Source of the DNA: Haliotis rufescens
Lineage: Eukaryota
Assembly (NCBI RefSeq): GCF_023055435.1
Contig: NW_025964360.1
Span: forward strand, 496,001-560,000
DNA: 64,000 nucleotides
Direction of reading: 5' to 3'
Shown here: piece by piece, positions 15,324-51,869 of the stretch
Numbering within the stretch: the stretch's first letter is position 1
Layout: each line of letters begins with the position of its first letter
Program-made: the position numbers and the translations under genes
Notes under the pieces: model-generated
What the model was told of the DNA's origin: nothing
What the model saw: the letters and a program-made list of their open reading frames with translations, nothing else
Databases searched by the model: none

Positions 15324-15357
15324 TTTTTTGATTGACTACAACCTTAAGCTCACAGAC

Positions 15358-18300
15358 CGCTACTTCACTACCTGCCTACTCCACGACACGCCTACTCCAC
15401 TACCCGCCGCCTACTCCACTACCCGCCGCCTACTCCACTACCCGCCGCCTACTCCACTATCCGCCGCCTACTCCACTACCCACCACCTACTCCACTACCC
15501 GCAGCCTACTCCACCACCCGTTGCCTACTCCACCACCCGTCGCCTACTCCACCACCCGTCGCCTACTCTACTACCCGTAGCCTACTCCACTACCCGCAGC
15601 CTACTCCACTATCCGCAGCCTATTCCACCATCCGCCGCCTACTCCACCAACCGCCGCCTTCTCCACTAACCGTCACCTACTCCACCACCCGTCGCCTACT
15701 CCACCACCCGCCTAATCCACTACCCGCCGCCTACTCCACTACCCGTCGCCTACTCCACCACCCGCCTACTCCACAACACGTCGCCTACTACACTACCCGT
15801 CGCCTACTCCACTACCCACCGCCTACATCACAACCGGTCAACTACTTCACTACCCGCCACCTACTCCACCACCCGTCGCCTACTCCACCACCCGTTGCCT
15901 ACTCTACTACCCGCCGCCTACACCACTACCAGTCAACTACTCCACTACCCGCCAGCTACTCCACCTCCCGCCGCCTACACCACTACCGGTCAACTACTCC
16001 ACTACCCGCCACCTACTCCACCACCCGCCGCCTACTCCACCAACCGCCGCCTTCTCCACTACCCGCCACCTACTCCACCATCCGCCGCCTACTCCACCAC
16101 CCGTCGCCTACTCCACCACCCGTCGCCTACTCCACCACCCCCCGCCTACTCCACCAACCGCCGCCTTCTCCACCACCCGTGGCCTACTCCACTACCCGCC
16201 ACCTACTCCACTACCCGCCGCCTACTCCACCACCCGTCGCCTACTCCACCATCCGCCGCCTGCTCCACCACCCGCCGCCTACTCCACCACCCGTCGCCTA
16301 CTCCACCACCCGCCGCCTGCTCCACCACCCGTCCCCTACTCCACCACCCGCCGCCTACTCCACCACCCGTCGCCTACTCCACCACCCGTCGCCTACTCCA
16401 CCACCCGCCGCCTACTCCACCACCCGTCGCCTACTCCACCACCCGTCGCCTACTCCACCACCCGCCTCCAAATCCACCACCCGTCGACAACTCCACCACC
16501 CGCCGCCTACTCCACCACCCGCCTACTCCACCACCCGTCGCCTACTCCACCACCCGTCGCCTACTCCACCACCCGTCGCCTACTCCACCACCCGCCGCCT
16601 ACTCCACCAACCGCCGCCTTCTCCACCACCCGTGGCCTACTCCACTACCCGCCACCTCCTCCACTACCCGCCGCCTACTCCACCACCCGTCGCCTACTCC
16701 ACCGGCCGCCGCCTGCTCCACCACCCGTCGCCTTCTCCACTACCCGCCACCTACTCTACTACCCGCCACCTACTCCACCATCCGCCGCCTGCTCCACCAA
16801 CCGCCGCCTTCTCCACTACCCACCACCTGCTCCACCACCCGTCGCCTACTCCACCACCCGTCGCCTACTCCACCACCCGCCGCCTGCTCCACCACCGCCT
16901 GCTCCACCACCCGTCGCCTACTCCACCACCCGCCGCCTACTCCACCACCCGCCGCATACTCCACCACCCGCCTACTCCACCACCCGTCGCCTACTCCACC
17001 ACCCGCCGCCTACTCCACCACCCGCCGCCTGCTCCACCACCCGCCGCCTACTCCACCACCCGTCGCCTACTCCACCACCCGTCGCCTACTCCACCACCCG
17101 CCACCTACTCCACCAACCGCCGCCTTCTCCACTACCCACCACCTACTCCACTACCCGCCACCTACTCCACCAACCGCCGCCTTCTCCACTACCCGCCACC
17201 TACTCCACCACCCGTCGCCTACTCCACCACCCGTCGCCTACTCCACCACCCGTCGCCTACTCCACCACCCGTCGCCTACTCCACCACCCGCCGCCTACTC
17301 CACTACCGGTCACCTACTCCACTACACGCCACCTACTCCACTACCCGCCACCCACTCCACTAACCGCCACCTAATCCACCACCCGCCACCTACTCCACTA
17401 CCCGCTACCTACTCCACTACCCGCCACCTACTCCACTACCCGCCACCTACTCCACTACCCGCCACCTACTCCACTACACGCCACCTACTCCACTACCCCC
17501 CGCCTACTCCACTACACGCCACCTACTCCACTACCCGCCACCTACTCCACTACCCGCCACCTACTCCACTACCAACAGCCTACTCCACTACCCGCCACCT
17601 ACTCCACTACACGCCACCTACTCCACTACCCGCCACCTACTCCACTACCCGCTACCTACTCCACTACCCGCCACCTAATCCACTACCCGCCACCTACTCC
17701 ACTACCAACAGCCTACTCCACTACCCGCCACCTACTCCACTACCCGCTACCTACTCCACTACCCGCCACCTACTCCACTACCCGCCACCTACTCCACTAC
17801 CCGCCACCTACTCCACTACCCGCCACCTAATCCACTACCCGCCACCTACTCCACTACCCGCCACCTACTCCACTACACGCCACCTACTCCACCACCCGCC
17901 ACCTACTCCACTACCCGCCACCTACTCCACTACCCACCACCTACTCCACTACCCACCACTTACTCCACTACCCGCCACCTACTCCACTACCCACCACCTA
18001 CTCCACTACCCGCCACCTACTCCACTACACTTCATCTACTCCACTACCCACATCCTACTCCACTACCCGCCACCTACTCCACTACACGCCACCTACTCCA
18101 CTACCCGCCACCTACTCCACTACCCGCCATCTACTCCACTACACGCCACCTACTCCACTACCCGCCACCTACTCCACTACCCACCACCTACTCCACTACC
18201 CGCCACCTACTCCACTACACTTCATCTACTCCACTACCCGCCACCTACTCCACTACACTTCATCTACTCCACTACCCACATCCTACTCCACTACCCGCCA

Positions 18301-18668
18301 CCTACTCCACTACACGCCACCTACTCCACTACACGCCACCTACTCCACTACCTACCATCTACTCCACTACCCGCCACCTACACTACTACCCGCCACCTAC
18401 TCCACTACCCACATCCTACTCCACTGCCCACATCCTACTCCACTACCCGCCATCTACTCCACTACCCGCCACCTACTTCACTACACGCCACCTACTCCAC
18501 TACCTACCATCTATTCCACTACCCGCCACCTACACTACTACCCGCCACCTACTCCACTACCCACATCCTACTCCACTACCCACATCCTACTCCACTACCC
18601 ACATCCTACTCCACTACCCACAGCCTACTCCACTACGCGCCACCTACTCCACTACGCGCCACCTACTA
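15358..18668. repeat. 3.3-kb 19-bp minisatellite (ctactccactacccgccgc and variants), extremely C-rich on the plus strand
   Basis: Unit length 19; variants drift along the array (ccgtcgcc-type, then ccgccacc-type). Confidence 0.95.
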
Positions 18669-18903
18669 AGGTGGGGTGTAGGTGCCATAATATGAAGCCG
18701 TTTACAGTGCAGTTTCATTATGAAATCATAAAGAATAATCTGCAACCAGAATGACCACCTGTTCCACTAAAGTGAGTCTCTTTCTTACGATCAGATTAGT
18801 ACGGTAATATATTTCTGGGTCCAATAGTTACAAAATAGCTACTGCGGGGATTCCGGGTCCTTGTCCCCCTCACTTATCGTAAGAGTCGTTTTAAATGGGG
18901 ATA

Positions 18904-19051
18904 CAGTTAACTACGTAATAACGAACTCAAAGGGACCATTAATGTTAATTCGTTATAACCGTAGTTCGTTATAAGCATAGGTACAACAAATATACAGTAA
19001 ATGGACGGGACCAAGAGATAGTTGGTTTCATCCGTCAGTTCGTTATACTGT
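18904..19051. mobile_element. MITE, diverged copy of the 175-bp family
   Basis: cagttaactacgtaataacgaactcaaagggacc...gttcgttatactg. Confidence 0.7.
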
Positions 19052-19219
19052 AGTGTCTTCCCGTGGATTCCGATGCCGTGGGGCGTTGTTCTTCTCATCA
19101 ACCACTAGTTTGTCCGATTCGACTATTTTCAGGCCCCCTGATAGAGCTGAAATATTGCTTAGTTTCATAATTCACAATTTATACAAAATATCTCATTCAC
19201 AACACACACTTAAGATCAA

Positions 19220-19550
19220 CCTCCTCCGTGGTCTACAGGTAGAGCGTCTGCCCGGAGAGCGGAAGGTCCGGGGTTCGATCCCCGACCGCGTCATAATAAA
19301 AGACGTTAACAGATGGTACTTGTTGTTACCCTGTCTGGCGCTCGGCATTAAGGGGATAAAACAAGGACTGGTCGGCCCGGAGTCATTTTACTGTGTCTGA
19401 GTCGGGTATTCATGTTAAACTGCGGCATTGTATCTCAGTGGGCTAGCAATATAAATCGGCATCAGTCCGGACTAGTACAAGCAGCCACACACACACGAAC
19501 ATGCACGTCGCTATATAAGTGCAATAATCTTGACGCGACGTAAAACCCAT
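19220..19550 (+). mobile_element. tRNA-derived SINE family C
   Basis: A/B-box-like head (gtggtctacaggtagagc...gggttcgatcccc) and shared body. Confidence 0.85.
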
Positions 19551-20411
19551 TATCATATAATGGGTAGGTTTCTCGGCGGGATAAAGCCAACGTATAAAAA
19601 CGATAACCGTTGGGGTCATATGCGGATAGAGATGCAAATATCAAAGGTCAAGTAGGGACTACTTTCATTGTTTATAAACAAACATGGCGTCGCCCTTGTC
19701 ATTCGACGATCGAGTCAGAATTAACCATCGGGAATCTGGATAAACTACAGAGATAATTGCTATCATTATCAAAAGAACAGTCTGATATACTGAAAATCAG
19801 TGTCTAACTGTGACGTAGCGAAGGCATTTTATAAGTTTTGGCAACTTTGGAGAAACAATTTTGCGAGGGCACGAGGCCTAGCCAAGCGGAATCAGTAGCC
19901 ATATCTGTGCTTGTAAGTTGTAGACCTCTGCGGCTTGAAACCTTCTCCACAAATTAAAATAGTTGGATTTGGCCGAAATATGTTTTTGAATTGTTACCTT
20001 GTTCCGTTTTGTCGCTATGTGTACATCTGACTACACTGCTTAACGTTATGACAGGACAGACCGACTGTCAACAACGTCTGACTGTGGCCATGACGTCTCA
20101 TAGACTAGCTTTAGAGTAGCTTCCCTTTGACAAAGGGCAGTTACTCTAGCGGACAGACCGATGATTGCCGCGAAAGGCAATTATAAACAATTGTCGTTTT
20201 GCGTATATGTTGCTTCGCCACTGTATAAGAAACAGATTTCAGTTGGAACTATATTGGCTACTGTCACTGTCCGACTGACACATCACTTACCCTGTGACGT
20301 AATAAATATTAATGCGCGCATTCCAGGAAAACTCGCAATGTTTCGGTAATGTTTATGAGAGAGGGAAAGCGATTTTGAAGCACAGAATTAAAGAATGACA
20401 ATATATGATAA

Positions 20412-29547: not shown

Positions 29548-29627
29548 TATAAATATGACTTGATAGATGCCTTTCATACTACATTCAAACTCCTATTCAA
29601 CTAAACACGTCACAAGACAAGGTAAGT
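29548..29627 (+). promoter_or_regulatory. TATA box (29548-29555), Inr-like TCATACT, non-coding exon 1 and donor (AAG|GTAAGT at 29622) of HExxH gene copy 1
   Basis: The same block is conserved upstream of copies 2 and 4. The matching acceptor tttttatttacAG (30704-30705) lies 4 nt before the ATG. Confidence 0.75.
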
Positions 29628-29968
29628 TGTGACAATTATCCACTCCAGTGGCTGTTTATTTAGATGGTTTGAATCGCAGATTAGCCTCGATAATGTTTTT
29701 GGGTTGTCAGCACCATAAACGAGCTCCTGGGTTTCACAAGTAGGACATAAATCTGAAATTCTGTTCAAAGCACGTTAAACCAAACTCACTCACTCACTCA
29801 CTCACTCACTCACTCACTCACTCACTCACTCTATTGCGTTGAGATCATATTCAAGTATATATTTCATTTCTCGCCATTTCTAATGCGACTTTTAATGTAC
29901 AACATTGTTTTGCTTTGCGGTATTCACGTTCGTTTTTTAACCATAGTAAAGACCTTGACATAGAACTG

Positions 29969-30143
29969 GAGTGAGTGAGTGAATATGGTTTTACGAAGCC
30001 ATGAGGAATATTCCAGCAATATCACGGGGGGGGGGGGGGACACAAGAAATGGGCTTCATACATTGTACCAATGTGCAAATTCGAACCCGTGCCTTCAGCG
30101 TGACGTTCTAACGCTTTAACCACCAGGCTACCCGACTGCCCCT
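29969..30143 (-). mobile_element. SINE family B in the intron of copy 1 (shared with copy 2 at about 38695-38865)
   Basis: Homology and identical flanks. Confidence 0.8.
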
Positions 30144-30240
30144 GATAGAACGGCAAACCTCTTGAATATTTGCATCCAATATCTACATTCTTTACATGAC
30201 TTCTACACCTTCAATTGTATATCACGGTTATACCAGTGTC

Positions 30241-30648
30241 AGGGGGCACGGGTGGCCCAGTCATCTAAGGCTTCACTGTGCAGAGTTGCGTCCCTTGGGC
30301 ACGCCAGAAACCTATGATTGTGGGTTCGAATCCCGGTTCGCCCCGATTATGTTTCTAGGTTTCTAGTGAGTGAGTGAGTGAGTTGGGTTTAACTCCGCTT
30401 TTAACAGTATTCCAGTTATATCACGGCGCGTCAGCTTAATGTGGGAGGAAAGCCCGAAGTGATGCAGGTCTCAGACGTATACCACTTCGGTGAAACCCAC
30501 GAGCACGGGTATGGTGCTGACAAACCTAGAAACATAATTGGGGCAAACCGGGATTCGAAACCACAATCATAGGTTTCTGGCGTGCCCAAGGGACGCAACT
30601 CTGCATAGCGAATCGCGGCGCCTTAGATGACTGGGCCACCCTTGCCCC
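30241..30648. mobile_element. SINE family D (tRNA-like head, V-domain-like body): partial plus-strand copy (30241-30363) abutting a full minus-strand copy (30365-30648)
   Basis: Inverted arms of about 120 bp; homology to 35402-35678, 39548-39818, 47910-48190 and 50555-50820. Confidence 0.8.
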
Positions 30649-30709
30649 CTTCCTATGAAGCTAAATTGGTATAAAATAACTGAACGTTTGCCTTTTTATT
30701 TACAGAAGC

Positions 30710-32950
30710 ATGACCCTGCTGCCCCTGATGTACCTCTCAATGATGCTCACGACCTGTTGCTTCACACAGAACACTGTCAAGCAGATAAAGGAAAACATGA
30801 AATCCTATGCCAAGGGCTATGTTATCCAATACTATGCGCCTTATGTTAACACACAACCTGATGAGCATAAAATGAAGCTCTTGAAACACCTAGAGGACAA
30901 CCTGCTACTAATTACCAGTACGGAGGACAAGGAGATCGATGGGATGGACACACTGGTAAAGGGAAGAAGTAAAGTTTCCACAGACGTTGAAGATAATCTT
31001 GGTCCTAAAATCAGAAGTTTGTCTGCAAAGATTGACAGTAACGATGGCTTGCTTGTCTCCAATCCACAGAATTTGATGAGGGCAGTTTCCCGAGATGTAG
31101 AGGACAGTTTGGAACATAAGATCAGGAGTCTGTCCAATAAGGTTGACAGTAACGATGGCTTGCTTGTCTCCAATCCACAGAATTTGATGAGAGCAGTTTC
31201 CAGAGATGTAGAGAACAGTTTGGAACATAAGATCAGGAGTCTGTCCAATAAGGTTGACAGTAACGATGGCTTGCTTGTCTCCAATCCACAGAATTTGATG
31301 AGAGCAGTTTCCAGAGATGTAGAGAACAGTTTGGAACATAAGATCAGAAGCTTGTCTGCAAAGGTTGACAGTAACGATGGCTTGCTTGTCTCCAATCCAC
31401 AGAATTTGATGAGAGCAATTTCCCGAGATGTGGAGAACAGTCTGGAACATAAGATCAGGAGTCTGTCGAATAAGGTTGACAGTAACGATGGCTTGCTTGT
31501 CTCCAATCCACAGAATTTGATGAGAGCAGTTTCCAGAGATGTAGAGAACAGTTTGGAACATAAGATCAGAAGTTTGTCTGCAAAGGTTGACAGTAACGAT
31601 GGCTTGCTTGTCTCCAATCCACAGAATTTGATGAGAGCAGTTTCCCGAGATGTAGAGAACAGTTTGGAACATAAGATCAGAAGTTTGTCTGCAAAGGTTG
31701 ACAGTAACAATGGCTTGCTTGTCTCCAATCCACAGAATTTGATGAGGGCAGTTTCCAGAGATGTAGAGAACAGTCTCACAGACGTCATTGAAGCGATCAT
31801 CGATCAGCTACACAAAAATATGACTAGCGATGCCCAACTGTATAATGTTTTGAAAGAAGCATTGTTGTCATGGTTTCAATATCATGCTGAACACGATGAT
31901 ATGCAACTTCACAACCTTGACTTGGAGAATCTGATTAATTGGCTGACACTTGTGCACAACTCAAGGAGAAACGTCAGCAAAGAAGAGGAATCCTTTTACA
32001 CACACTGGAACACATCCCTGCCTATCTTGAGAGATACTTTGTCGTTCGCCGATACCGTCAAACCATTGTCAACATACGTATCCCTTTCTCTGATAGGCTT
32101 GACAGATAGCTTCATGAATCTCTACTGGCCTTTCCGTCGTGACATCAACCTAATGAACCAAAGATTAGCAGTCAAGGGTTTCAGGGGCACAGACGTGAGT
32201 GAAAATGATGCTAAGAAAGCGTTCTTTGACGAAATCAGAAAAATTCAGCCGATTCATCTCCCTGTGAAGAAAAATGAAATTGTACTCATCTTTGATGATG
32301 AGGACATAGCAGATTGGTTGAACGTCACAGGAGTTATGTCCCTTTCACCAGCCTACATGGCTTCTAAGAAACACATATTCACTGGGGAAGAGCAAAAGAA
32401 GATATCGACCACTGCACATGCCGCTCTCAGGATGATCAACAACACTCATCCTGAACTCTTTGACGCAATGACACAGATGATATCCTGCATTGCTTTCTAC
32501 AAACAAGAACACAAGGTTAACTTAGCTGGAGGAGTTCGCTCTGCCCTTGGTATGTTCTGGATGGACCCGAGTGTTGGGAGAGAATGGAGCGTTCCCTTCA
32601 TGGCGGAGCAAATAGTCCACGAGTACACCCACAACTCACTCAACTATGCAGAATTTGTCCATGGAACCTACAACGATAAATCGTCGTTGGGAAAGGCTGA
32701 GGTGAAATCGGCAATTCGTCTGGTTCCTCGACCCTACGACAAATCCCTGCATGCAGCTTACGTGTCAGCGGGACTTGTAACCTTTCATTCCAGGACTGGC
32801 TATCTGGAAAGAGCTGCACAGCTGCTGGAAACTCTTCCCCAAGCCGTGCGTGATCTGGCAACTGTGGAGGCAGAGAAGCATGTGTTGGATGGGTCCGGCA
32901 GGGCAATAGTCAAGTTCCTCACTGACTACATGTACCTCACAAGACTCTGA
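30710..32950 (+). CDS. Secreted repeat-containing protein with C-terminal alpha-KG-HExxH (peptide beta-hydroxylase-like) domain, copy 1 (746 aa, 7 x 37-aa repeats)
   Basis: Hydrophobic N-terminus MTLLPLMYLSMMLTTCCFT. Repeats at 30977-31777. GGVRSALGMFWMDP...AEQIVHEYTHNSL (HEYTH at 32618-32632)...SAIRLVPRPYDKSLHAAYV. Acceptor before the ATG; AATAAA at 32983. Confidence 0.85.
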   Translation: MTLLPLMYLSMMLTTCCFTQNTVKQIKENMKSYAKGYVIQYYAPYVNTQPDEHKMKLLKHLEDNLLLITSTEDKEIDGMDTLVKGRSKVSTDVEDNLGPKIRSLSAKIDSNDGLLVSNPQNLMRAVSRDVEDSLEHKIRSLSNKVDSNDGLLVSNPQNLMRAVSRDVENSLEHKIRSLSNKVDSNDGLLVSNPQNLMRAVSRDVENSLEHKIRSLSAKVDSNDGLLVSNPQNLMRAISRDVENSLEHKIRSLSNKVDSNDGLLVSNPQNLMRAVSRDVENSLEHKIRSLSAKVDSNDGLLVSNPQNLMRAVSRDVENSLEHKIRSLSAKVDSNNGLLVSNPQNLMRAVSRDVENSLTDVIEAIIDQLHKNMTSDAQLYNVLKEALLSWFQYHAEHDDMQLHNLDLENLINWLTLVHNSRRNVSKEEESFYTHWNTSLPILRDTLSFADTVKPLSTYVSLSLIGLTDSFMNLYWPFRRDINLMNQRLAVKGFRGTDVSENDAKKAFFDEIRKIQPIHLPVKKNEIVLIFDDEDIADWLNVTGVMSLSPAYMASKKHIFTGEEQKKISTTAHAALRMINNTHPELFDAMTQMISCIAFYKQEHKVNLAGGVRSALGMFWMDPSVGREWSVPFMAEQIVHEYTHNSLNYAEFVHGTYNDKSSLGKAEVKSAIRLVPRPYDKSLHAAYVSAGLVTFHSRTGYLERAAQLLETLPQAVRDLATVEAEKHVLDGSGRAIVKFLTDYMYLTRL
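30977..31777 (+). repeat. Coding 111-bp tandem repeat, 7 units (SRDVENSLEHKIRSLSNKVDSNDGLLVSNPQNLMRAV)
   Basis: Direct inspection of the ORF. Confidence 0.95.
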
Positions 32951-33494
32951 ATGTTCCATGCTGATTTTATATAAACTTTTTCAATAAACGGTTGCCAACT
33001 ATAATAGTTTTTACATTGATGTGCTTTTTGTGCAAGACAATTCAGATGTCAGAAGGTGTTCTCACATCCACACTGAACACGAACACGTTTTACTAAATGT
33101 CTGCTGTCCACTAGATATCTTGTCAATCGATGGTGCTGACTAAATGATACTTGAGTCAGTATATCATAGCTGTTCATTAATATCCCAGTCAATGGTACCC
33201 TAACTATTAAGCACTGGTCAGTGACATCACATTAACCCTCAAAAGTAATTAAATACCAACAGATTGGACAGTGGCATTTTTTCATCTTACAATTCAGATC
33301 CTCCAAGGGAAGAAAAGCTTCCTCAATTTTGAGCTGGTCAGTGGTTTCACCAGACCAACCAGGTCATGTGCACAGTGCACAATTTTAATGCACATGTCAA
33401 GAGAATCAATTGAGCACAGGTATCAGAAGCTATTAAGGATCAGAGTGAATAACACCACATCAAATCAGCCACCCTTGTCAGTTATGACCTTATG

Positions 33495-35020
33495 TATAAC
33501 TTATAACCTCCAATATACCCTGTAATGTTACACACCTTCTACACTGTGTAACGTGTCACTTCCAATATATGCTGTGATTTTACACTTCTTATAAGTATGT
33601 AACGTCACGCCTTCAATATACCTCTTGATGTTACACTTCTTATAAGTGTGTAATGTGTCACTTCCAAAATACCTCTTGATGTTACACTTCTTCTACACGG
33701 TGTAGCGTGTCACCTCCAATGTACCATGTGATGTTACACCTCTTCTACACTGTGTAACGAGACGCCTCCAATATACCGTGTGATGTTACACCACTTCTAC
33801 ACTGCATAACGTGTCACCTCCAATATGCCCACTGATGTTACACTTCTTATAACTGTGTAACGTTTCACCTCCGATATATACTGTGAGGTTACACCTCTTC
33901 TACAATGTGTAACGTTTCACCTCCGATATATACTGTGAGGTTACACCTCTTCTACACTGTGGAACGAGACACCTCCAATATACCCTGTGATGTTAACTTC
34001 TTCTATACTGTGTAACGTTTCATCTCCAATATACCGTTTGATGTTGCAACACTTCTATACTGTGTAACGTGTCATCTCAAATATACGGTGTAAGGTTACA
34101 CCTCTTCTACACTGTGTAACGTGTCACCTTCAATATACCCTTTGAGGTTACACCTCTTCTACACTGTGTAACGTGTCACCTTCAATATACCGTGTGAGGT
34201 TACACCTCTTCTACACTGTGTAACGTGTCACCTTCAATATACCGTGTGAGGTTACACCTCTTCTACACTGTGTAACGTGTCACCTTCAATATACCGTGTG
34301 AGGTTACACCTCTTCTACACTGTGTAACGTGTCACCTTCAATATACCGTGTGATGTTACACCTCTTTTACACTGTGTAACGTGTCACCTCCGATATACCG
34401 TGTGAGGTTACACCTTTTCTACACTGTGGAACGTGTCACCTTCAATATTAACTTTCAGGTTACACCTCTTCTACACTGTGGAACGTGTCACCTTCAATAT
34501 ACCGTGTGATGTTACACCTCTTCTACACCGTGGAACGTGTCACCTCCAATATACCGTGTGAGGTTACACCTCTTCTACATTGTGGAACGTGTCACCTCCA
34601 ATATACCGTGCGAGGTTACACCTCTTCTACACTGTGTAACGTGTCACCTCCAATATACCGTGTGAGGTTACACCTCTTTTACACTGGGTAACGTGTTACC
34701 TCCGATATATCGTGTGAGGTTACACCTCTTCTACACTGTGTAACGTGTCACCTCGAATATACCGTGTGAGGTTACACCTCTTCTACACTGTGTAACATGA
34801 CACCTCCAATATACCGTCTGATGTTACTTTTCTTATAACTATGTAACGTGTCACCTCAATTATACTTTGTGATGTTACACCTCTTATATACTGTATAACG
34901 TGACACCTCCAATATACTTTGTGATGTTACATTTCTCATAACTGTGTAACGTGACGCCTTCAATTTTACCTCTTGATGTTACACCTCTTTAACAGGGTGT
35001 TCGTGACACCTCCAATATAC
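33495..35020. repeat. 52-bp satellite type I (gtgaggttacacctcttctacactgtgtaacgtgtcaccttcaatataccgt) downstream of copy 1
   Basis: Period 52, made of two related 26-bp halves. Confidence 0.9.
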
Positions 35021-35401
35021 TGGATAAAGAGACACCTCGAATGTTTTTTAACACGTTACATGTAGCACGACACTATATCGAGTAAAGTTACACCTACAAC
35101 ACGCTAGATAATGGTACACCTTCAATAAACTGGGTACGGTTCAACCGCCAAAGTCTTGGTAACTTTAAATAGTTTGTGTATTGTGTTATGCGGAACCTCC
35201 AAAACACCTTGTTACGTTACACCTCTAATGTCTACTTGGTAACTTGTGTTGAACATCTCATATACTGGGTAATGTGAAACCTGATTTATACCTTGTGATG
35301 TTGAATATATAATATCCTGGATAATGTAAAAACCTCATTCCTACCTTATCACGTAGAACATCTAATATACTGGGTAATGTGAAACCTCATTTATACCTTG
35401 T

Positions 35402-35678
35402 AAATGAGTGAGTTGGGTTTAACTCCGCTTTTAACAGTATGCCAGCTATACCACGGCGTGTCAACTTTATGTGAGAGGAAAGCCCGAATTGATGCAGGTC
35501 TCAGACGTCTACCACTTCGGTGAAACCCACGAGCACGGGTACGGTGCTGACAAACCTGGATACATAATTGGGGCGAACCGGGATTCGAACCCACAATCAT
35601 AGGTTTTTGGCGTGTCCAAGGGACGCAACTCTGCACAGCTAATCGCGGCGCCTTAGACGACAGGGCCATCCGTGCCCC
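35402..35678 (-). mobile_element. SINE family D, TSD ttataccttgt
   Basis: Direct repeats at 35391-35401 and 35679-35689. Confidence 0.9.
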
Positions 35679-37539
35679 TTATACCTTGTGATGTTGAACA
35701 TCTAATATACTTGGTAATGTGAAACCTCATTTATACCTTGTGGTGTTGAACATCTAACAAACTGGGTGATGTGAAATATAACATAATATTATAAAGACAG
35801 CAACTCATGATCACTCACTATGTTTGTAAATATATTGTTTCTCTTGATGCAGGTTAGTGTGCCTCGAACCTGTCAGTCGCTATCAGTGACCACGTCATCC
35901 GTGTCAGCACAACACGGCCCATATCCTGCACATTGGTCAATCCCGTAACATCCACAACTTTATGTGACCAGACGTCATGCGATTATACACACCTGTGCTT
36001 CGATAAGGATGTATTTACACGACATTTATGACTTAAAGTTCACAAATCTGAAATAATTGTTTTAACCACTAAGTGTCGGATATATTTGTTTTTATCTCAC
36101 CCGTCCAACGATAATTTAATGAGATCACATAAAAAACACAGATCATTATTTTCTTTTATTATCTCGTCAACAAAAACAAGGTCAAGCAGAAGTCATCTGA
36201 CTTTCAATTAAATCCATTGACGAAATATTGCCGACGTTAGTTAACACTTGCAATTCCCTAAACCACTGACGTATATAGAATGTATTTAAATGAGTATCCC
36301 ATCAGGATACCAACCCCAATTCACACGACAGATCATCTTCCTGAGGCAAGAGAGTTAACTGGCTATCACGAGTAATGTCCTTTCTATGCCTCTCCTATGG
36401 ACCAATCAGATTCAACCTCTTATATCACTTGCATTTGCTTCAAACAAAACGGTGGCGCCCAGTAAAGAAGATCTGATCGATAATCAAGATCTATATTGTG
36501 ATAAAACGAGTCATACATCGCGAGGTGCATCAAATCACATGAGCACCTTGATTAAAATGTTTGTTGACAACGAGTTAGTGTTGCACATGCTTTGCAAACT
36601 CTGCAGTCGACCGAAATCTGCATGACTCTTTACGAACCGGATTTCGATTTCGGTGCGCGATTTTGATTGGACTATGCATAGACTCGTTAGTCCAGCCAAA
36701 CTGTAACTCCATAATACCAGCCTAGTTCGGCAAGGGAGGAAACTGGACTTTTATAGTCAGTTAACTCACTTGCCTTGGGAAGATGACGACCGATAAAATA
36801 AGACATTTTGTATTCACTAAAAAATAAAATGACGAGAAAATGACGAGGCGGGTAGGTCAGCAATGTTCAACCTATATAGTACGATGCCCTGGATGGACCA
36901 AAAATACAAACAGTGGTTTATAATATGAGTAATGGTCCAGTCTCCAATACGATGACACACATGCACTGAAACCATCCTGCATCTGCAGATGTGTTTGGGT
37001 ACGTCCCAATGTCGACGTGTACTCTATAGAACCATCAGTATTTACCAAAACAGACCATACAATGTATAGCAGCCGCTCTCAGCGGGCCACAGTGGTCTAT
37101 ATCGCTGTTCAGTGTTCTATGTCTTAGCCATACCAGGATCCACATATCGTGGGTTGAAATCCATGATTCCCCAGGTGATGATCGTTGGTTTTTCACCACT
37201 ACTCCCTCAATTGGAACAAAGTCCATTTTAATATAATATCATGTAAATAATGTCATATTATATATTAGAGTCAGGACCTGCTTCTGGTATACACCGTACC
37301 CCTAGGCCTGCTTGGGGGTTTACTAAAAGCTGACATGACGTCATATGACAGAAATACTGTTCAACGCGGCGCCAAACCCAACACCCTCCCTCACTCAAAG
37401 TGTCCTTGGCGCTACAAGTCGCCTGTACATCGTTACGTCCTTCAGTTATAACAGGATCCGATTGTCAAGGATAACAATGCCAGGCCCGCCTCATAAAGAT
37501 CTGACAGAAGTATTGTATTCTATGGGTATATCTAAACAG

Positions 37540-39878: not shown

Positions 39879-42230
39879 ATGACCCTGCTGACCCTGATTT
39901 ACCTCTCAATGATGCTCACGACCTGTTGCTTCACACAGAGCACTGTCAAGCAGATAAAGGAAAACATGAAATCCTATGCCAAGGGCTATGTTATCCAATA
40001 CTATGTGCCTTATGTTAACACACAACCTGATGAGCATAAAATGAAGCTCTTGAAACACCTAGAGGACAACCTGCTACTAATTACCAGTACGGAGGACAAG
40101 GAGATCGATGGGATGGACACACTGGTAAAGGGAAGAAGTAAAGTTTCCACAGACGTTGAAGATAATCTTGGTCCTAAAATCAGAAGTTTGTCTGCAAAGG
40201 TTGACAGTAACGATGGCTTGCTTGTCTCCAATCCACAGAATTTGATGAGGGCAGTTTCCCGAGATGTAGAGGACAGTTTGGAACATAAGATCAGGAGTCT
40301 GTCCAATAAGGTTGACAGTAACGATGGCTTGCTTGTCTCCAATCCACAGAATTTGATGAGGGCAGTTTCCCGAGATGTAGAGGACAGTTTGGAACATAAG
40401 ATCAGGAGTCTATCCAATAAGGTTGACAGTAACGATGGCTTGCTTGTCTCCAATCCACAGAATTTGATGAGAGCAGTTTCCAGAGATGTAGAGAACAGTT
40501 TGGAACACAAGATCAGGAGTCTGTCCAATAAGGTTGACAGTAACGATGGCTTGCTTGTCTCCAATCCACAGAATTTGATGAGAGCAGTTTCCCGAGATGT
40601 AGAGAACAGTTTGGAACATAAGATCAGGAGTTTGTCTGCAAAGGTTGACAGTAACGATGGCTTGCTTGTCTCCAATCCACAGAATTTGATGAGAGCAGTT
40701 TCCGGAGATGTAGAGGACAGTTTGGAACATAAGATCAGGAGGCTGTCCAATAAGGTTGACAGTAACGATGGCTTGCTTGTCTCCAATCCACAGAATTTGA
40801 TGAGAGCAGTTTCCCGAGATGTAGAGAACAGTTTGGAACATAAGATCAGGAGTTTGTCCAATAAGGTTGACAGTAACGATGGCTTGCTTGTCTCCAATCC
40901 ACAGAATTTGATGAGGGCAGTTTCCCGAGATGTAGAGGACAGTTTGGAACATAAGATCAGAAGTTTGTCTGCAAAGGTTGACAGTAACAATGGCTTGCTT
41001 GTCTCCAATCCACAGAATTTGATGAGGGCAGTTTCCCGAGATGTAGAGAACAGTCTCACAGACGTCATTGAAGCGATCATCGATCAGCTACACAAAAATA
41101 TGACTGGCGATGCCCAACTGTATAATGTTTTGAAAGAAGCATTGTTATCATGGTTTCAATACCATGCTGAACACGATAATATGCAACTTCACAACCTTGA
41201 CTTGGAGAATCTGATTAATTGGCTGACACTTGTGCACAACTCACGGAGAAACGTCAGCAAAGAAGAGGAATCCTTTTACACACACTGGAACACATCCCTG
41301 CCTATCTTGAGAGATACTTTGTTGTTCGCCGATACCGTCAAACCATTGTCAACATACGTATCCCTTTCTCTGATGGGCTTGACAGATAGCTTCATGAATC
41401 TTTACTGGCCTTTCCGTCGTGACATCAACCTAATGAACCAAAGATTAGCAGTCAAGGGTTTCAAGGGCACAGACGTGAGTGAAAGTGATGCTAAGAAAGC
41501 GTTCTTTGGCGAAATCAGAAAAATTCAGCCGATTCATCTCCCTGTGAAGAAAAATGAAATTGTACTCATCTTTGATGATGAGGACATAGCAGATTGGTTG
41601 AACGTCACAGGAGTTATGTCCCTTTCACCAGCCTACATGGCTTCTAAGAAACACATATTCACTGGGGAAGAGCAAAGGAGGATATCGACCACTGCACATG
41701 TCGCTCTCAGGATGATCAACAACACTCATCCTGAACTCTTTGACGCAATGACACAGATGATATCCTGCATTGCTTTCTACAAACAAGAACACAAGGTTAA
41801 CTTAGCTGGAGGAGTTCGCTCTGCCCTTGGTTTGTTCTGGATGGACCCGAGTGTTGGGAGAGAATGGAGCGTTCCCTTCATGGCGGAGCAAATAGTCCAC
41901 GAGTACACCCACAACGCACTCAACTATGCAGAATTTGTCCATGGAACCTACAACGATAAATCCACGTTGGGAAAGGCTGAGGTGAAATCGGCCATTCGTC
42001 TGGTTCCTCGTCCCTACGACAAATCCCTGCATGCAGCTTACGTGTCAGCGGGACTTGTAACCTTTCATTCCAGGACTGGCTATCTGGAAAGAGCTGCACA
42101 GCTGGTGGAAACTCTTCCCCAAGCCGTGCGTGATCTGGCAACTGTGGAGGCAGAGAAGCTTGTGCTGGATGGGTCCGGCAGGGCAATAGTCAAGTTCCTC
42201 ACTGACTACATGTACCTCACAAGACTCTGA
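39879..42230 (+). CDS. Secreted repeat-containing alpha-KG-HExxH-like protein, copy 2 (783 aa, 8 x 37-aa repeats)
   Basis: Near-identical to copy 1; repeats at 40146-41057; HEYTH...RLVPRPYDKSLH intact; AATAAA at 42263. Confidence 0.85.
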   Translation: MTLLTLIYLSMMLTTCCFTQSTVKQIKENMKSYAKGYVIQYYVPYVNTQPDEHKMKLLKHLEDNLLLITSTEDKEIDGMDTLVKGRSKVSTDVEDNLGPKIRSLSAKVDSNDGLLVSNPQNLMRAVSRDVEDSLEHKIRSLSNKVDSNDGLLVSNPQNLMRAVSRDVEDSLEHKIRSLSNKVDSNDGLLVSNPQNLMRAVSRDVENSLEHKIRSLSNKVDSNDGLLVSNPQNLMRAVSRDVENSLEHKIRSLSAKVDSNDGLLVSNPQNLMRAVSGDVEDSLEHKIRRLSNKVDSNDGLLVSNPQNLMRAVSRDVENSLEHKIRSLSNKVDSNDGLLVSNPQNLMRAVSRDVEDSLEHKIRSLSAKVDSNNGLLVSNPQNLMRAVSRDVENSLTDVIEAIIDQLHKNMTGDAQLYNVLKEALLSWFQYHAEHDNMQLHNLDLENLINWLTLVHNSRRNVSKEEESFYTHWNTSLPILRDTLLFADTVKPLSTYVSLSLMGLTDSFMNLYWPFRRDINLMNQRLAVKGFKGTDVSESDAKKAFFGEIRKIQPIHLPVKKNEIVLIFDDEDIADWLNVTGVMSLSPAYMASKKHIFTGEEQRRISTTAHVALRMINNTHPELFDAMTQMISCIAFYKQEHKVNLAGGVRSALGLFWMDPSVGREWSVPFMAEQIVHEYTHNALNYAEFVHGTYNDKSTLGKAEVKSAIRLVPRPYDKSLHAAYVSAGLVTFHSRTGYLERAAQLVETLPQAVRDLATVEAEKLVLDGSGRAIVKFLTDYMYLTRL

Positions 42231-42431: not shown

Positions 42432-45295
42432 CTCAACGGCAGGACAACTGGAGACAAAGAGGGTAGTTTCACTTACATAGCAGATCAAGGATGTAGCGTA
42501 ATCGATTATTTTATAGGTTCAGTTAATGTTCACAATTGTTGTCAATCCATGTTTGTGGATACAAGAGTTGAGTCAAAACATATGCCTGTATGTCTACATT
42601 TGGACATATTTCTCCCTAAAGTATCTACAAGTGATGATTATCTTTCCACCAAAACACACAAATATAAATGGAACCCTCGTAAGCGTGATGTGTTTATAGG
42701 AAGTATAACAAATCTATGTCCATCCTTCAACGAGCTCATCGATCTTTTAACTTTTGATTTCAATCTTGCCCTCGAAAAATTTGTTAATGTTGTTCTTTGT
42801 GCCGCTGACTGTATGAAGGTACCTTGTGTTAAAAGTTCACCCCGAAATACGGGGTTTTATAATAGTGAATGCAGACGAGCAAAACGGGAAGCGAGGCGAT
42901 ACATGAGGAAATTCAAAGAGAAGAAATCTAACGAAAATAAGTTAATCTTTTGTAAAATGAGAAACAAGTATAAACATGTTTGCAGAACAGCAAAATCAAA
43001 CTATCAATTTATGACACGAACAAAACTAAAGCTATCTCTATCTGATTCAACCACATTTTGGAAAGAGTTACGGAGTATATCAGGTCGTAGGGAAACAAAG
43101 AATAACATAAGTAAAGAGTGCTGGTTTGATCATTTTACAAACGTTTTTCAGTGTACAGATGTATTACATGTTGAAGTCGAATGTCAATGTGATGAAGATT
43201 TTATACTTGATGAGATTGACCAGTGTATTTTGGAGTCGCCGATTACCGACTCAGAAATCCACAAGGCTATAAATCGTAAAGATAAAGAATGGCAAATCCC
43301 CTGGTGTTGATGACGTGGTCATTGAAATGTTAAAATGTTGTGAAAATGTAATAACTCCTTTCCTACGAAATTTGTTCAATAAGTTATTTGATTCTGGATT
43401 ATTCCCTCAGAACTGGACAAAAGCTATTATCCTTCCACTACATAAGAAAGGTAACAAAAATAATCCAGATAACTTTAGAGGGATATCTCTATTGTGTACA
43501 ATTAGTAAGGTTTACACAAGTGTCTTAAACTCTAGACTTACTAACTGGGCTAATATAAGAAGTAAATTACCCGAGACACAAGCAGGCTTTAGGCAGGGAT
43601 ATTCTCCTGCTGACCACATATTCACGTTGAATGCAATTGTTAACAAATGTTTATCGAACAGAAAAGGGAAATTATACGTTGCTTTTGTGGATTTTAAAAA
43701 AGCCTTTGATTCAGTAAATCATCTTAAACTATGGGAGTGTCTGCACGATGTAGGCTTGGGTGGAAAGATGATGAGAGCACTTAAGGGAATCTATGCCTCC
43801 GTAAAAGCGTGTGTGAGATGTAATGATAACATTTATACAGAATATTTTGATTGTCCTAACGGAGTTAAACAAGGCTGTATATTAAGCCCTCTATTATTTT
43901 CCTTTTTCATCAATGAACTGTCAAATGATGTTTCATCACATGGGAAACACGGCGTACAATTATTTCCTGACTTGTTTGAAATATTATTATTATTGTTTGC
44001 CGACGATGTTATTCTTGTCTCTGACACAGTAACTGGTTTACAGAACCAACTTCATATTCTTGATAACTTTGCAGATTCACATGAATTAACGGTTAATTTA
44101 GATAAAACGAGTGTTGTTGTATTTAGACGAGGAGGGCGGTTATCTGTTCATGAGAAATGGTTCTATAAAGGCAAACGTATTTCAACCGCCAACTCCTATA
44201 GATATCTTGGGTTTGTATTCTCATATACATCAAAGATGAACCAATGTGTTTCAGATCTAGCATCAAGGGGTAAACGAGCTTTAATGGAAATATTTCGCAA
44301 TCTACGGAAGATTGGTTTTGTTGACACTTCAGTTTTCTTTAAAATATTTGATACTCAGATTCAAACTATTCTTTTATATGGTGCGGAAATATGGGGTGTA
44401 GACAGATTTGAAAAAATAGAACAAGTGCATATTATGGCTTGTAAGAAGTTTCTTAACGTTGGTTTGCAAACCCCAAATGCTATTGTGTATGGGGAATGCG
44501 GTCGGTACCCACTACATGTAAATGCTATGTGTCGTTCTGTAAAGTATTGGCTAAAACTGATTGAAATGGACGAAGATAGGATACCAAGAAAATCTTATAA
44601 TATGCTTGTATATAACGACAAGTGTGGTCGTCAAAACTATGCTTCTTCTATTCGTTCCATATTATTTTCTCACGGATTCGGAGTAGTTTGGCTCAGTCAA
44701 GCTGTTGGCGACAAACCGTCATTCATGAATAGTTTTAAAAACGTTTTGATAAATATGTTCTACCAATCATAGAATAGTACTATCAAGGCTAGTTCTAGGT
44801 ACATTCTGTATAAAGAATTTAAAAGTCTCCTGGAACCAGAAAAATACCTTTCCATTATTACTGAAATAAAATATCGAAATGTTTTGATAAGGCTTAGAGC
44901 CGGGCTACTAAGACTTAAGGTAAACGAAGGTAGATGGGCTGATATTGACTTAAGTTTACGACTCTGTCCCATATGTCAAACAAGTATAGAGAATGAATAT
45001 CATTTTACTTTAGAATGTGAATATTACAACGATATTAGACATCTGTATTTACCAACAACATTTTGCAATAATCCAAATATGCATAAATTTAAAACGCTAC
45101 TGTCATCTTCGTGTAAACAATTCCTTGGAAAACTATGTAAATACCTGTATTACAGCTATGAAAGAAGACGTAATTATGAAAAGCCTGTAAACCTGTAAAT
45201 TTGTACCTGACATTACCTTTTTTCATGTACCACACTATTTCAAATGTATGTATTGTATATGGGCCAGTGGCCTTGGTACAAATAAAGACTTCTTC
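42432..45295 (+). mobile_element. 5'-truncated non-LTR retrotransposon (CR1/L2 group): end of the APE endonuclease, RT, and C-terminal Cys motif; inactivated
   Basis: Starts in frame LNGRTTGDKEGSFTY...SVIDYF. RT motifs QAGFR, FVDFKKAFDSV, GVKQGCILSPLLF, LLFADD. Frameshift near 43280 and TAG at 44770. Inserted at a TACT site that is uninterrupted downstream of copies 1, 3 and 4. Confidence 0.92.
43315..44772 (+). pseudogene. LINE ORF2 reverse transcriptase segment
   Basis: Canonical non-LTR RT motifs; bounded by a frameshift and a premature stop. Confidence 0.9.
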
Positions 45296-45664: not shown

Positions 45665-46660
45665 TGTGACTCCTCTAATATACCGTGTGATGTTACATTT
45701 CTTCTACACTGTGTAACGTGTAACTTCCAATATATGCTGTGATTTTACACTTCTTATAAGTATGTAACGTCAATATACCTCTTGATGTTACACTTCTTAT
45801 AAGTGCGTAATGTGTCACTTCCAAAATACCTCTTGATGTTACACTTCTTCTACACTGTGTAACGTGTCACCTCCAATATACCGTGTGATGTTACACCTCT
45901 TCTACACTGTGTAACGTGTCACCTCCGATACATCCTTTGATGTTACAACTCTTCTACACTGTGTAACGTTTCACCTCCGATATATACTGTGAGGTTACAC
46001 CTCTTCTACACTGTGTAACGTGTCACCTCCGATATATACTGTGAGGTTACACCTCTTCTACACTGTGTAACGTGTCACCTCCAGTATACCCTCTGAGGTA
46101 ACACCTCTTCTACACTGTGTAACGTGTCACCTACAATATTCCGTGTGAGGTTACACCTCTTCTGCAGTGTGTAAAGTGTCACCTCCAATATACCCTGTGA
46201 GGTTACACCTCTTCTACACTGTGTAACGTGTCACCTCCAATATACCTTGTGATGTTACACTTCTTCTACACTGTGTAACGTGACGCCTTCAAAATAACTC
46301 TGGATGTTACACTTCTTCTACACTGTGTAACGTGTCAACCCCAATATACCGTGTGAGGTTACACCTCTTTTACAGTGTGTAACTTGACACCTCCAATATT
46401 CCCTGTGATGTTACACTTCTTATGAATGTGTAACGTGACGCCTCCAATATACCCTGTGATGTCACACCTCTTCTACAGTGTGTAACGTGTCACCTCAAAC
46501 ATACTTTGTGATATTATTTTTCTTCTAAACTGTGTAAAGTGACGCCTTCAATTATACCTCTTGATGTTACACCTCTTATATACTGTATAACGTGACACAT
46601 CCAATATACTTTGTGATATTACATTTCTTATAACTGTGTAACGTGACGCCTTCAATATAC
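45665..46660. repeat. 52-bp satellite type I downstream of copy 2
   Basis: Homologous to 33495-35020. Confidence 0.9.
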
Positions 46661-51690: not shown

Positions 51691-51869
51691 ATAAAGATAC
51701 ACCTCGAATGTTTTTGAACACCTTACACCTCAAACACGATAGATAATCGACGCCTTCAATAAACTTGGTACGGTTCAACCGCCAAAATATCTGGTAACTT
51801 TCAAAAGTTAGTGTATTGTGTAATGCAGAACCTCCAAAACAACTTGTTACGTTACACCTCCAATACCGC

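Follow-up and report, generated by a model that had tools for sequence, protein, structure and literature searches.

aKG-HExxH peptide oxygenases (TIGR04267 / IPR026337) such as ChlH (Morishita et al. 2024), PflC/PosC, BpmH and PesO were recognised as oxygenases only in 2024. The characterised members covered by the papers cited here are bacterial RiPP-tailoring enzymes, which are described as acting on ribosomal precursor peptides and which catalyse the hydroxylation of His, Asp, Phe, Gln and Pro as well as oxidative backbone cleavage (PMC12636437, PMC13060819). In eukaryotes, core peptide and tailoring enzyme can be part of one polypeptide, as in the fungal borosins, which consist of a methyltransferase plus core, and in the plant burpitides, in which a BURP-domain cyclase is combined with core repeats; in both cases the core number varies between paralogues (review: PMC6514808). 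In convertase-processed polyprotein precursors, such as the fungal dikaritins, which are cut by Kex2, or molluscan neuropeptide precursors with GKR sites, a signal peptide is followed by many tandem copies of a short peptide, but no neuropeptide or dikaritin precursor is known to carry its own oxygenase domain. Animals also possess ER-lumenal Fe(II)/alpha-ketoglutarate hydroxylases, which modify prolyl and lysyl residues or beta-hydroxylate Asp and Asn in secreted proteins; these enzymes are retained in the ER and act in trans.

A 64,000-nucleotide stretch of the abalone Haliotis rufescens (GCF_023055435.1, contig NW_025964360.1, positions 496,001 to 560,000, forward strand), referred to as the window, contains four paralogous genes (A to D). 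Gene A encodes a protein with a signal-peptide-like N-terminus, a conserved N-terminal helix, seven 37-aa repeats and a C-terminal aKG-HExxH oxygenase domain (see the table below). In contrast to the bacterial enzymes, it is encoded in an animal nuclear genome with a TATA box, a spliced 5'UTR and a polyadenylation signal, and it carries a signal-peptide-like N-terminus and a tandem peptide array within the same polypeptide; no radical-SAM partner, separate precursor gene or cluster of other tailoring enzymes is present in the window. Compared with borosins and burpitides, enzyme class and chemistry are different, the host is an animal, and the array lies between an N-terminal helix and the catalytic core rather than at a terminus; moreover, autocatalysis is only a hypothesis here. 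The cosubstrates would be the same as those of the ER-lumenal hydroxylases, but the fold is unrelated (HExxH fold against double-stranded beta-helix), and no C-terminal retention motif was seen in the gene A protein. Homologues were found in molluscs, an octocoral and rotifers, in most lineages with tandem peptide arrays in the same chain, and a literature search returned no report of animal members of this family.

Features of gene A and its paralogues; positions refer to the window
Feature	Position	Strand	Residues	Remarks
TATA-like box of gene A	29548-29555	+		TATAAATA, about 20-30 nt upstream of the 5'UTR exon; the same element stands before gene B at 37954
5'UTR exon (start approximate)	29566-29621	+		ends at a GTAAGT donor at 29622
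5'UTR intron	29622-30705	+		boundaries GT...TTTACAG; holds a very abundant repeat element at about 30259-30669
Coding sequence of gene A	30710-32950	+	746 aa	single-exon open reading frame
Signal-peptide-like N-terminus	30710-30769	+	1-20	hydrophobic stretch, judged by eye; present in all full-length homologues
Conserved motif N-[IMV]-x-x-Y	30794-30835	+	29-42	part of a confidently modelled helix (pLDDT 86-95 over aa 21-70)
Array of seven 37-aa units	30998-31774	+	97-355	each unit a predicted 28-aa amphipathic helix plus the loop SNDGLLVSN
Helical linker	31775-31921	+	356-404	fast-evolving; pLDDT 56-75
aKG-HExxH oxygenase domain	31922-32947	+	405-746	pLDDT mostly above 90
NSRRN	31958-31972	+	417-421	at the end of helix 405-418, pLDDT 88-95
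HEYTH metal-binding motif	32618-32632	+	637-641	H637, E638 and H641
Conserved downstream Arg and His	32729-32752	+		R674 and H681
AATAAA signal and transcript end	32983-32998	+		signal at 32983-32988, end at about 32998
Paralogue B	39879-42230	+	783 aa	eight units
Paralogue C	48251-49936	+	561 aa	two units
Paralogue D	59290-61284	+	664 aa	about five 35-aa units, the last four with KVRR

The initial annotation described near-perfect repeats between a signal peptide and an enzyme domain, and this observation is confirmed. Tandem Repeats Finder reports a 111-bp unit with 6.9 copies and 93% matches at 31006-31774. A degenerate half-unit lies just before the seven units, which explains why the repeats had been annotated to start at 30977. 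The array consists of S (16%), L (13.5%), N (12%), V (10%), D (8%) and R (8%) as its main residues. The basic sites are also as annotated: KIR-S and VSR-D occur in every unit of gene A, KIRR once in gene B, KVRR in gene D, and NSRRN at aa 417-421. However, two corrections are required. Gene A has no dibasic site ([KR][KR]) in its N-terminal 400 residues, and NSRRN, which had been put forward as a linker processing site, lies in confidently modelled structure and is not dibasic in the abalone paralogue L007, so that it is a poor candidate for a cleavage site. Pfam hits on the full protein (WH_Rok, DUF5805 and others) all fall on the repeats without an individually significant stretch and are regarded as repeat-inflated artefacts.

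The assignment of the enzyme domain is well supported. It matches TIGR04267 with 64.5 bits (curated cut-off 40, E 1.2e-17, aa 570-734). H637, E638, H641 and R674 are invariant in an alignment of 134 homologues, and H681 is conserved in at least 90% of the sequences. HEYTH aligns with the HExxH of ChlH, and R674 and H681 align with an Arg and a His of this enzyme; their exact roles are taken second-hand from the literature, in which positively charged residues for alpha-ketoglutarate binding are reported as a feature of these oxygenases (PMC12614342). While a single-sequence search of solved structures found nothing useful, a profile-based search identified ChlH. Foldseek gave an E-value of 6.5e-7, and VIA-align a Z-score of 20.9 to ChlH (8s5f_D; rmsd 3.1 A over 248 residues) and of 18.3 to SjiH. 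The fold is also distantly zincin-like, with Z 4-6 to thermolysin-type and clostridial protease domains, and one characterised family member showed hydrolytic cleavage under some conditions (PMC12636437). It could be speculated that the domain acts as a metalloprotease, for instance by cutting its own array; however, proteases score Z 6 or less, and together with the conserved Arg and His this makes a hydrolytic function very unlikely.

The initial annotation further proposed that the repeats are in-cis substrates, which are self-hydroxylated and released as peptides, and this interpretation is partly supported, mainly by comparison. About 20 homologues from gastropods, bivalves, an octocoral and further assemblies carry tandem arrays of 2 to about 40 units of 15-52 aa at the same place. 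These arrays are of unrelated sequence, and the shared position was seen in at least two named animal phyla and in two metagenomic relatives; homologues from ENA, JGI and Logan include P0013, P0025, P0027, P0030, P0035 and P0037. The same abalone genome contains three further array types, which are 23 x 38 aa ending in LLAAKR, 6 x 52 aa ending in AAAVGKR, and the KVRR-bearing units of gene D. In Mercenaria, MKLSD x17 and MKISD x5-7 are found, Ruditapes has MMYNAKD / MLFSD / TKR units, and the octocoral Paramuricea has 17 x WLMRVQDKP. Up to about 40 x WLMRVEDKP are present in other homologues, in which the array is flanked on the other side by a second oxygenase domain of AlkB type. Conservation within arrays is position-specific: MKLSD is at least 94% conserved, while the spacer varies. 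The pattern M-x-hydrophobic-x-[DN], which was chosen after seeing the data, occurs 3-38 times in 11 proteins, against 0.2-2.3 expected after shuffling. M-x-hydrophobic-x-D is shared by bivalve and octocoral-type arrays but lacking in the abalone arrays, in which a different stretch is conserved (NDGL ... QNLM[RK]AVSRDVE), so that no single core sequence unites the family. The ARMD cleavage motif of PflC/PosC was not seen by eye in the arrays inspected.

Unlike gene A, which has only single-Arg sites, several members have dibasic sites that delimit their units, namely paralogues D (KVRR), L006 (GKR) and L008 (AAKR) and several bivalve proteins, and [KR]R sites are denser in the N-terminal parts than in the catalytic domains of most members. 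Most arrays are proline-rich, and the one other array that was modelled, that of the Mercenaria protein P0163, is predicted to be disordered; they do not look like stalks. The abalone unit is under purifying selection, with a dN/dS of 0.18-0.23 among units and of 0.11-0.23 against gene D units. Between A-type and D-type units, dS is 1.0-1.7, whereas dN is only 0.20-0.23. The repeat peptide occurs nowhere else in the 1.33-Gb genome.

Phylogenetic analysis revealed that the animal clade (support 100) is sister (support 96) to a bacterial clade comprising Massilia aquatica, Pseudoduganella violacea, Azospirillum oryzae and the metagenomic P0035 and P0037; in the second tree, the homologue P0012 was mis-trimmed and should be ignored. 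The N-terminal N-x-x-x-Y motif is shared with this clade, in which it is located at the N-terminus, and is found after the signal peptide in gastropod, bivalve, rotifer and AlkB-bearing homologues. In Massilia and Pseudoduganella, a conserved 120-aa ORF with a leader-like head and 2-3 copies of PPAAQYVWGSQ lies directly upstream of the enzyme gene and is a candidate precursor, while in P0035 and P0037 short repeats are fused inside the enzyme as in animals. These bacterial proteins, which have not been characterised, lack a signal peptide, and their arrays are short (2-5 units).

Taken together, the most likely reading, to which a probability of about 0.45 is assigned, is that the array is the enzyme's own substrate, that is, a multi-core precursor fused to its tailoring enzyme. 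In this view, the catalytic domain would oxidise a residue in each unit of its own chain or of a neighbouring molecule during passage through the ER and Golgi, and the most likely chemistry would be beta-hydroxylation of an Asp or Asn in the most conserved stretch, K-V-D-S-N-D-G-L ... Q-N-L-M-R. By inference, a cofactor-dependent enzyme in transit would benefit from a tethered substrate. In paralogues with units ending in KR, GKR or KVRR, convertases would then release free peptides; for gene A, however, release is uncertain, and the modified array may remain one polypeptide. The release of free peptides is in any case considered less likely than the substrate role. The gene anatomy, transcription and splicing, the enzyme family and fold, the array with the selection acting on it and the family-wide architecture are demonstrated by the analysis, whereas the oxygenase activity, the role of the array as substrate, the identity of the modified residue and the release of peptides are inferred, and no modification has been observed.

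If the arrays are substrates, this would be the first bacterial-type RiPP chemistry found built into animal secreted-peptide production and a new example of enzyme-fused multi-core precursors alongside borosins and burpitides. It would also predict new modified peptides (beta-hydroxy-Asp/Asn or similar) in abalone, clams and corals, with possible roles in signalling, defence or metal and calcium binding. A more far-reaching possibility, which is unlikely on present evidence but not excluded, is that molluscs, octocorals and relatives possess a bacterial-derived, self-contained RiPP-like system. Here, one secreted polypeptide would carry up to about 40 copies of a core peptide threaded between the N-terminal helix and the catalytic core, in some lineages with the AlkB-type oxygenase on the other side. 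The enzyme would oxidise its own array in the secretory pathway, and convertases would release hydroxylated, or oxidatively cleaved and amidated, peptides as secreted bioactive molecules, with the abalone cluster being one rapidly evolving branch of this system. Even if the arrays are not substrates, the family is an uncharacterised, by its signal-like N-terminus secreted, oxygenase of likely bacterial origin with fast-evolving paralogues.

Structure prediction did not reveal an interaction between array and enzyme. In the AlphaFold2 model of full-length gene A, the array has a pLDDT of 40-60 and no docked repeat. Co-folding of a repeat with the domain, which had been suggested beforehand, gave a score of only 0.01 against a mark of 0.34 for the catalytic part (aa 372-746, with Fe) and a 50-aa repeat segment (aa 141-190), and is not used as evidence either way. 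In the model of Mercenaria P0163, one of seven near-identical units had a raised pLDDT of 65 against 25-37, which is not clearly explained by alignment depth; this is only a hint. The initial annotation had also considered a helical stalk or a matrix-binding region, and this alternative stays alive for gene A. The array could be a chain of amphipathic helices that spaces, oligomerises or anchors the enzyme to a membrane, mucus, matrix or mineral surface, while the HExxH domain hydroxylates other secreted proteins or peptides in trans. Indeed, the predicted 28-aa helix is strongly amphipathic, with a period of 3.7-3.8 and a moment that was reached by 0 of 1000 shuffles, dibasic sites are missing, and purifying selection fits a structural role equally well. 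Furthermore, repeat-less members (L007, P0008, P0009, Mya, Mactra and the rotifers) show that the enzyme does not need an array, and the candidate substrate of the bacterial sister clade is a separate gene. However, model confidence is low and no packing is predicted. The features of a coiled-coil stalk are absent, since the helices are interrupted by 9-aa loops and the hydrophobic moment is weak at the canonical period of 3.5, although an amphipathic helical repeat of another kind is not excluded. In most other members, the arrays are short, proline-rich or acidic, and several are cut by KR/GKR in each unit, which does not fit a stalk, and the short motif conserved between octocoral-type and bivalve arrays is hard to explain by a spacer role. 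A structural or binding module is considered less likely than a substrate.

It was also considered that the N-terminal region is a pro-segment, which is removed by convertases to activate the enzyme, or a tolerant linker without a specific role. Bacterial relatives have a plain, variable, low-complexity spacer of 50-90 aa between the N-terminal motif and the catalytic core, and the animal arrays could therefore be expansions of this linker by tandem duplication. Copy number changes quickly, with 2, 7 and 8 units among near-identical paralogues and 6 units in L006 against one in its H. cracherodii orthologue. In several gastropod members, the catalytic part is preceded by a basic site ending in Arg or Lys and followed by Asp, Glu or Ile ([KR]-[KR]-[DE] in most), and the linker next to the array evolves neutrally (dN/dS 1.04 between genes A and D over aa 356-400). 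The repeat units themselves, however, are not neutral, with synonymous sites near saturation between A-type and D-type units, and conservation inside arrays is position-specific. Arrays of up to about 40 units and of 23 KR-delimited units would be costly for a mere pro-segment, and this explanation is regarded as doubtful.

Gene A is expressed as a spliced mRNA that carries both the array and the enzyme part. Contigs of four sequencing runs cover 30704-32998 and nothing beyond. An RNA-type contig of run X5 joins 56 nt resembling the 5'UTR exon to the coding exon at 30704/30706; its 5' end does not match the window exactly but resembles the 5'UTR exons of genes A and B with several differences, so it comes from an allele or a paralogue. 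A contig of run X1 ends at 32998 followed by adapter letters, and the depth is zero beyond this point. No tRNA gene was found in the abundant repeat inside the intron, which has an extreme contig depth.

Gene A is a single open reading frame of 746 codons in a piece of an abalone genome, and the closest database protein, with 97% identity, is an uncharacterised protein of Haliotis rufescens. The anatomy of the gene is that of an ordinary animal gene with a TATA-like box, a short 5'UTR exon, an intron and a polyadenylation-type signal (see the table). Assembled contigs of four public runs, whose records specify neither library type nor tissue, cover the coding exon and nothing further downstream, and one of these contigs ends at 32998 followed by adapter letters. 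Upstream, the cover comes from an abundant repeat located within the intron, which reaches contig depths of 10^5 in the RNA-type runs and shows many rearranged joints. This element is probably an abundant, transcribed short interspersed element, and ARAGORN found no tRNA gene in it. Another contig carries 56 nt of a sequence resembling the 5'UTR exon, which is joined at the acceptor; however, this sequence differs at several places from the 5'UTR exons of the window itself and thus stems from an allele or a paralogue. A spliced mRNA that includes both the repeats and the enzyme part therefore exists.

Positions of the features in the window and at the loci compared with it
Feature	Position	Strand	Remarks
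Stretch with G+C up to 0.66	14000-20000		very strong C-over-G skew
924-aa ORF	15895-18669		within the G+C-rich stretch
TATA-like box of gene A	29548		
5'UTR exon of gene A, donor	29622		GTAAGT
Contig cover from the abundant intron repeat	about 29711-30669		
Abundant repeat element in the 5'UTR intron	30259-30669		
5'UTR intron, end	30705		TTTACAG
Contig cover of gene A in four public runs	30704-32998		
Coding sequence of gene A	30710-32950	+	746 codons
Seven 37-aa units of gene A	30998-31774		aa 97-355
Tandem Repeats Finder call	31006-31774		111-bp unit, 6.9 copies
NSRRN	31958-31972		
AATAAA signal	32983-32988		
Satellite arrays of a 52-bp unit	33506-34500 and beyond; also about 35300-35700 and 46250-47760 (- strand)		19 copies at 85% in the first
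Reverse-transcriptase ORF	43315-44769	+	RVT_1, E 3.5e-36
Tc3-type transposase remnant	50968-51702	-	
Tc3-type transposase remnant	55719-56369	-	
Gene D	59290-61284		
Broken fifth copy (L005, L009, L011)	562024-565934 of contig C582, genome G000		just downstream of the window
120-aa ORF of Pseudoduganella violacea	5515-5877 of locus L031		
120-aa ORF of Massilia aquatica	5465-5830 of locus L030		

The repeats described in the initial annotation are real: the array called by Tandem Repeats Finder corresponds to seven 37-aa units in the protein, which are preceded by a degenerate half-unit. The composition, which was described as rich in Asp, Asn, Ser and Leu, and the basic sites (KIR-S and VSR-D, KVRR in the fourth gene copy and KIRR once in the second) were also confirmed. 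Two points, however, have to be corrected. Gene A does not possess any dibasic site in its first 400 residues, and the NSRRN sequence, which had been put forward as a dibasic site in the linker, lies at the end of a helix modelled at pLDDT 88-95 and is not dibasic in the paralogue L007. It is therefore a poor candidate for a cleavage site. Each unit further contains the sequence S-L-E (S-L-D in H. asinina), which fits the S-x-E pattern of secretory-pathway casein kinases; judged from this motif alone, the array could also be phosphorylated.

The C-terminal 340 residues match NCBIfam TIGR04267, the aKG-HExxH-type peptide beta-hydroxylase, with 64.5 bits against a curated cut-off of 40. In an alignment of 134 homologues, H637, E638, H641 and R674 are invariant, and D677 and H681 are nearly so. 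A profile of this alignment finds ChlH (PDB 8s5f) and aligns the HExxH motif, the Arg and the His. The AlphaFold2 model is confident over this part, with pLDDT values mostly above 90, and superposes on ChlH at Z 20.9 (rmsd 3.1 A, 248 residues) and on SjiH at Z 18.3, while zincin proteases reach Z 6 at most. A hydrolytic rather than oxidative enzyme is therefore considered very unlikely. According to the literature consulted, members of this family are Fe(II)/alpha-ketoglutarate oxygenases of bacterial RiPP pathways, which beta-hydroxylate His, Asp, Phe, Gln or Pro, and which in the case of PflC/PosC also cleave the backbone oxidatively, thereby leaving a C-terminal amide.

The window holds four tandem paralogues (genes A to D) with 7, 8, 2 and about 5 units. 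A fifth copy just downstream of the window is broken: its N-terminal part with two diverged units is open for 160 aa, and the catalytic part is in pieces with TAG and TAA stops. Three further genes located elsewhere in the genome are about 50% identical in the catalytic part, but have quite different N-terminal regions. One of them has 23 units of 38 aa, each ending LLAAKR, one has 6 units of 52 aa, each ending AAAVGKR, and one has no repeats but a single GKR before the domain. The end of the 52-aa unit (P-A-N-L-Q-A-A-A-V-G-K-R-D) resembles the end of the gene A unit (P-Q-N-L-M-R-A-V-S-R-D), and it is tempting to speculate that VSR-D is a decayed GKR-D site; however, this suggestion is based solely on a reading of two short strings. 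The repeat peptide of gene A occurs nowhere else in the 1.33-Gb genome.

A search of 1.84 billion representative proteins revealed 22 close hits, followed by a gap to weaker ones. The named close hits come from gastropods (several Haliotis species), bivalves (Mercenaria, Mya, Mactra, Ruditapes and Pinctada), an octocoral (Paramuricea clavata) and bdelloid rotifers (Adineta). All of them are annotated as uncharacterised, and text searches found no paper on animal members. All full-length members start with a hydrophobic signal-like stretch, as judged by eye, which is followed by the conserved motif N-[IMV]-x-x-Y; the gene models of many homologues, however, begin inside their arrays and are probably truncated. 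Between this motif and the catalytic core, many members carry tandem arrays of unrelated length and sequence. These include MKLSD plus ten variable residues (x17), MKISD...EKR (x5-7), MKLID...HPRS (x12), WLMRVQDKPNENDNA (x17), WLMRVEDKPSTDPDNR (up to about 40 copies), MMYNAKD / MLFSD / TKR units, MMYSGKR units and a C-x-Y-R-x-R-P motif. In P0169, a protein from a Logan assembly, the N-terminal region repeats C-x-Y-R-[YN]-R-P about six times, which is a different array type with a Cys in each unit. An AlkB-type 2OG-Fe(II) oxygenase domain (PF13532) precedes the HExxH domain in P0025, P0171 and P0173, three proteins from ENA assemblies, and in the Adineta proteins P0175 and P0176. In the ENA proteins, it lies between the N-terminal motif and the array, so that up to about 40 WLMRVEDKP units are located between the two oxygenase domains, whereas the rotifer proteins, in which it likewise follows the N-terminal motif, have no array.

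Conservation inside the arrays is position-specific. In the 17 units of the homologue P0018, MKLSD is kept at 94% or more, while the middle varies. The pattern M-x-hydrophobic-x-[DN] occurs 3-38 times in the N-terminal parts of 11 proteins, against 0.2-2.3 times after shuffling, and 0-1 times in their catalytic parts; however, the pattern was chosen after the sequences had been inspected, and the numbers thus describe the data rather than test a hypothesis. The abalone arrays do not contain this pattern. Furthermore, [KR]R pairs are several-fold denser in the N-terminal parts than in the catalytic parts of most members, but not in gene A. On a tree of catalytic domains, repeat-bearing and repeat-less proteins are interleaved, and the domain of the 6-unit abalone gene is almost identical to that of an H. 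cracherodii protein with one unit. Arrays therefore expand and contract quickly.

Among the units of genes A, B and C, most DNA differences are synonymous (dN/dS 0.18-0.23), and a central stretch of about 55 nt, encoding K-V-D-S-N-D-G-L-L-V-S-N-P-Q-N-L-M, is nearly identical in every unit. Between A-type and D-type units, synonymous sites are near saturation (dS 1.0-1.7 over 33 codons), while dN is 0.20-0.23 (dN/dS 0.11-0.23). In contrast, the neighbouring linker has a dN/dS of 1.04, and the catalytic domain has a dS of only 0.18 and a dN/dS of 0.32. The samples are small and the units are not independent; however, the direction is clear, and the peptide sequence of the unit is conserved more strictly than its surroundings. 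This excludes a neutral spacer, but does not distinguish a substrate from a structural element. The related view that the array is an expanded tolerant linker or a pro-segment is considered unlikely. The difference in synonymous divergence between the catalytic parts and the repeat units of genes A and D implies that either the catalytic parts are homogenised by gene conversion or the two array types are much older than the gene duplication.

AlphaFold2 models each unit of gene A as a 28-aa helix plus the 9-aa loop SNDGLLVSN, at low confidence (pLDDT 40-60) and without defined packing. The predicted helix is strongly amphipathic: its hydrophobic moment peaks at a period of 3.7-3.8 residues, a value that was reached by 0 of 1000 shuffles, and is weak at the 3.5 of canonical coiled coils. 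An amphipathic helical binding or spacing module, with an enzyme acting on substrates in trans, is the next-ranked, although doubtful, alternative to a substrate role of the array. The N-terminal helix with the conserved motif is modelled at pLDDT 86-95 in gene A and 89-97 in the Mercenaria protein P0163, which is unusual for a free helix and suggests, from model confidence alone, that it packs on the catalytic core. In P0163, the array is predicted to be disordered (pLDDT 25-37), except for the last MKISD unit with a pLDDT of 65, which is a hint at most.

The nearest non-animal hits include a Bacillus phage protein and an Ectobacillus protein named as a putative peptide-modification protein. 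Two metagenomic proteins, P0035 and P0037, have the same N-terminal motif, followed by four or five short tandem repeats (..KLQMALHTE.., ..KFVMALHQD..), which are fused before the domain. Further proteins with the motif, but with a plain spacer of 50-90 aa, occur in metagenomes and in Massilia aquatica, Pseudoduganella violacea and Azospirillum oryzae. In the first two of these bacteria, a 120-aa ORF with a ribosome-binding site lies 35-50 nt upstream of the enzyme gene. Its first 26 residues form a leader-like head, which is almost identical between the two genera and is followed by two or three copies of PPAAQYVWGSQ. This ORF looks like a separate, so far undescribed multi-core RiPP precursor, and it is known to neither Pfam nor NCBIfam. 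In the P. violacea locus, the enzyme gene is followed by a gene for a 550-aa protein of unknown family and a GNAT-like gene. On a tree of catalytic domains, the animal clade (support 100) is sister (support 96) to the clade holding P0037 and these bacteria; however, the tree came from a quick search and is unrooted, and no direction or date of any transfer is claimed.

It was speculated in the initial annotation that the repeats are self-hydroxylated and released as peptides, and this interpretation is partly supported, mainly by comparison. While the enzyme type, the secretory targeting, as judged from the signal-like stretch, and the array can be regarded as shown, catalysis itself, the use of the array as a substrate, the modified residue and the release of peptides are inferred. 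In this view, a cofactor-dependent oxygenase without a C-terminal retention motif would act only while it travels through the ER and Golgi, and the one peptide certain to be near it would be the array tethered between its own N-terminal helix and its core. The known peptide-tailoring role of the family, the recurrence of arrays at the same position with conserved short motifs and frequent convertase sites, the repeat-bearing neighbour gene in the bacterial sister clade and the purifying selection on the abalone unit together make the cis-substrate reading the best single explanation, although it remains tentative, with a probability of about 0.45. For gene A, the likeliest target would be an Asp or Asn in the most conserved stretch, which is a guess from the known substrate range of the family. 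Release of free peptides is plausible for the KR, GKR and KVRR paralogues, but doubtful for gene A.

The satellite arrays lie downstream of gene A and again between the paralogues, and the duplicated block thus includes them. The reverse-transcriptase ORF and the two transposase remnants are also located between the paralogues. The 924-aa ORF in the G+C-rich stretch has no Pfam match, and the stretch is probably low-complexity or satellite sequence.
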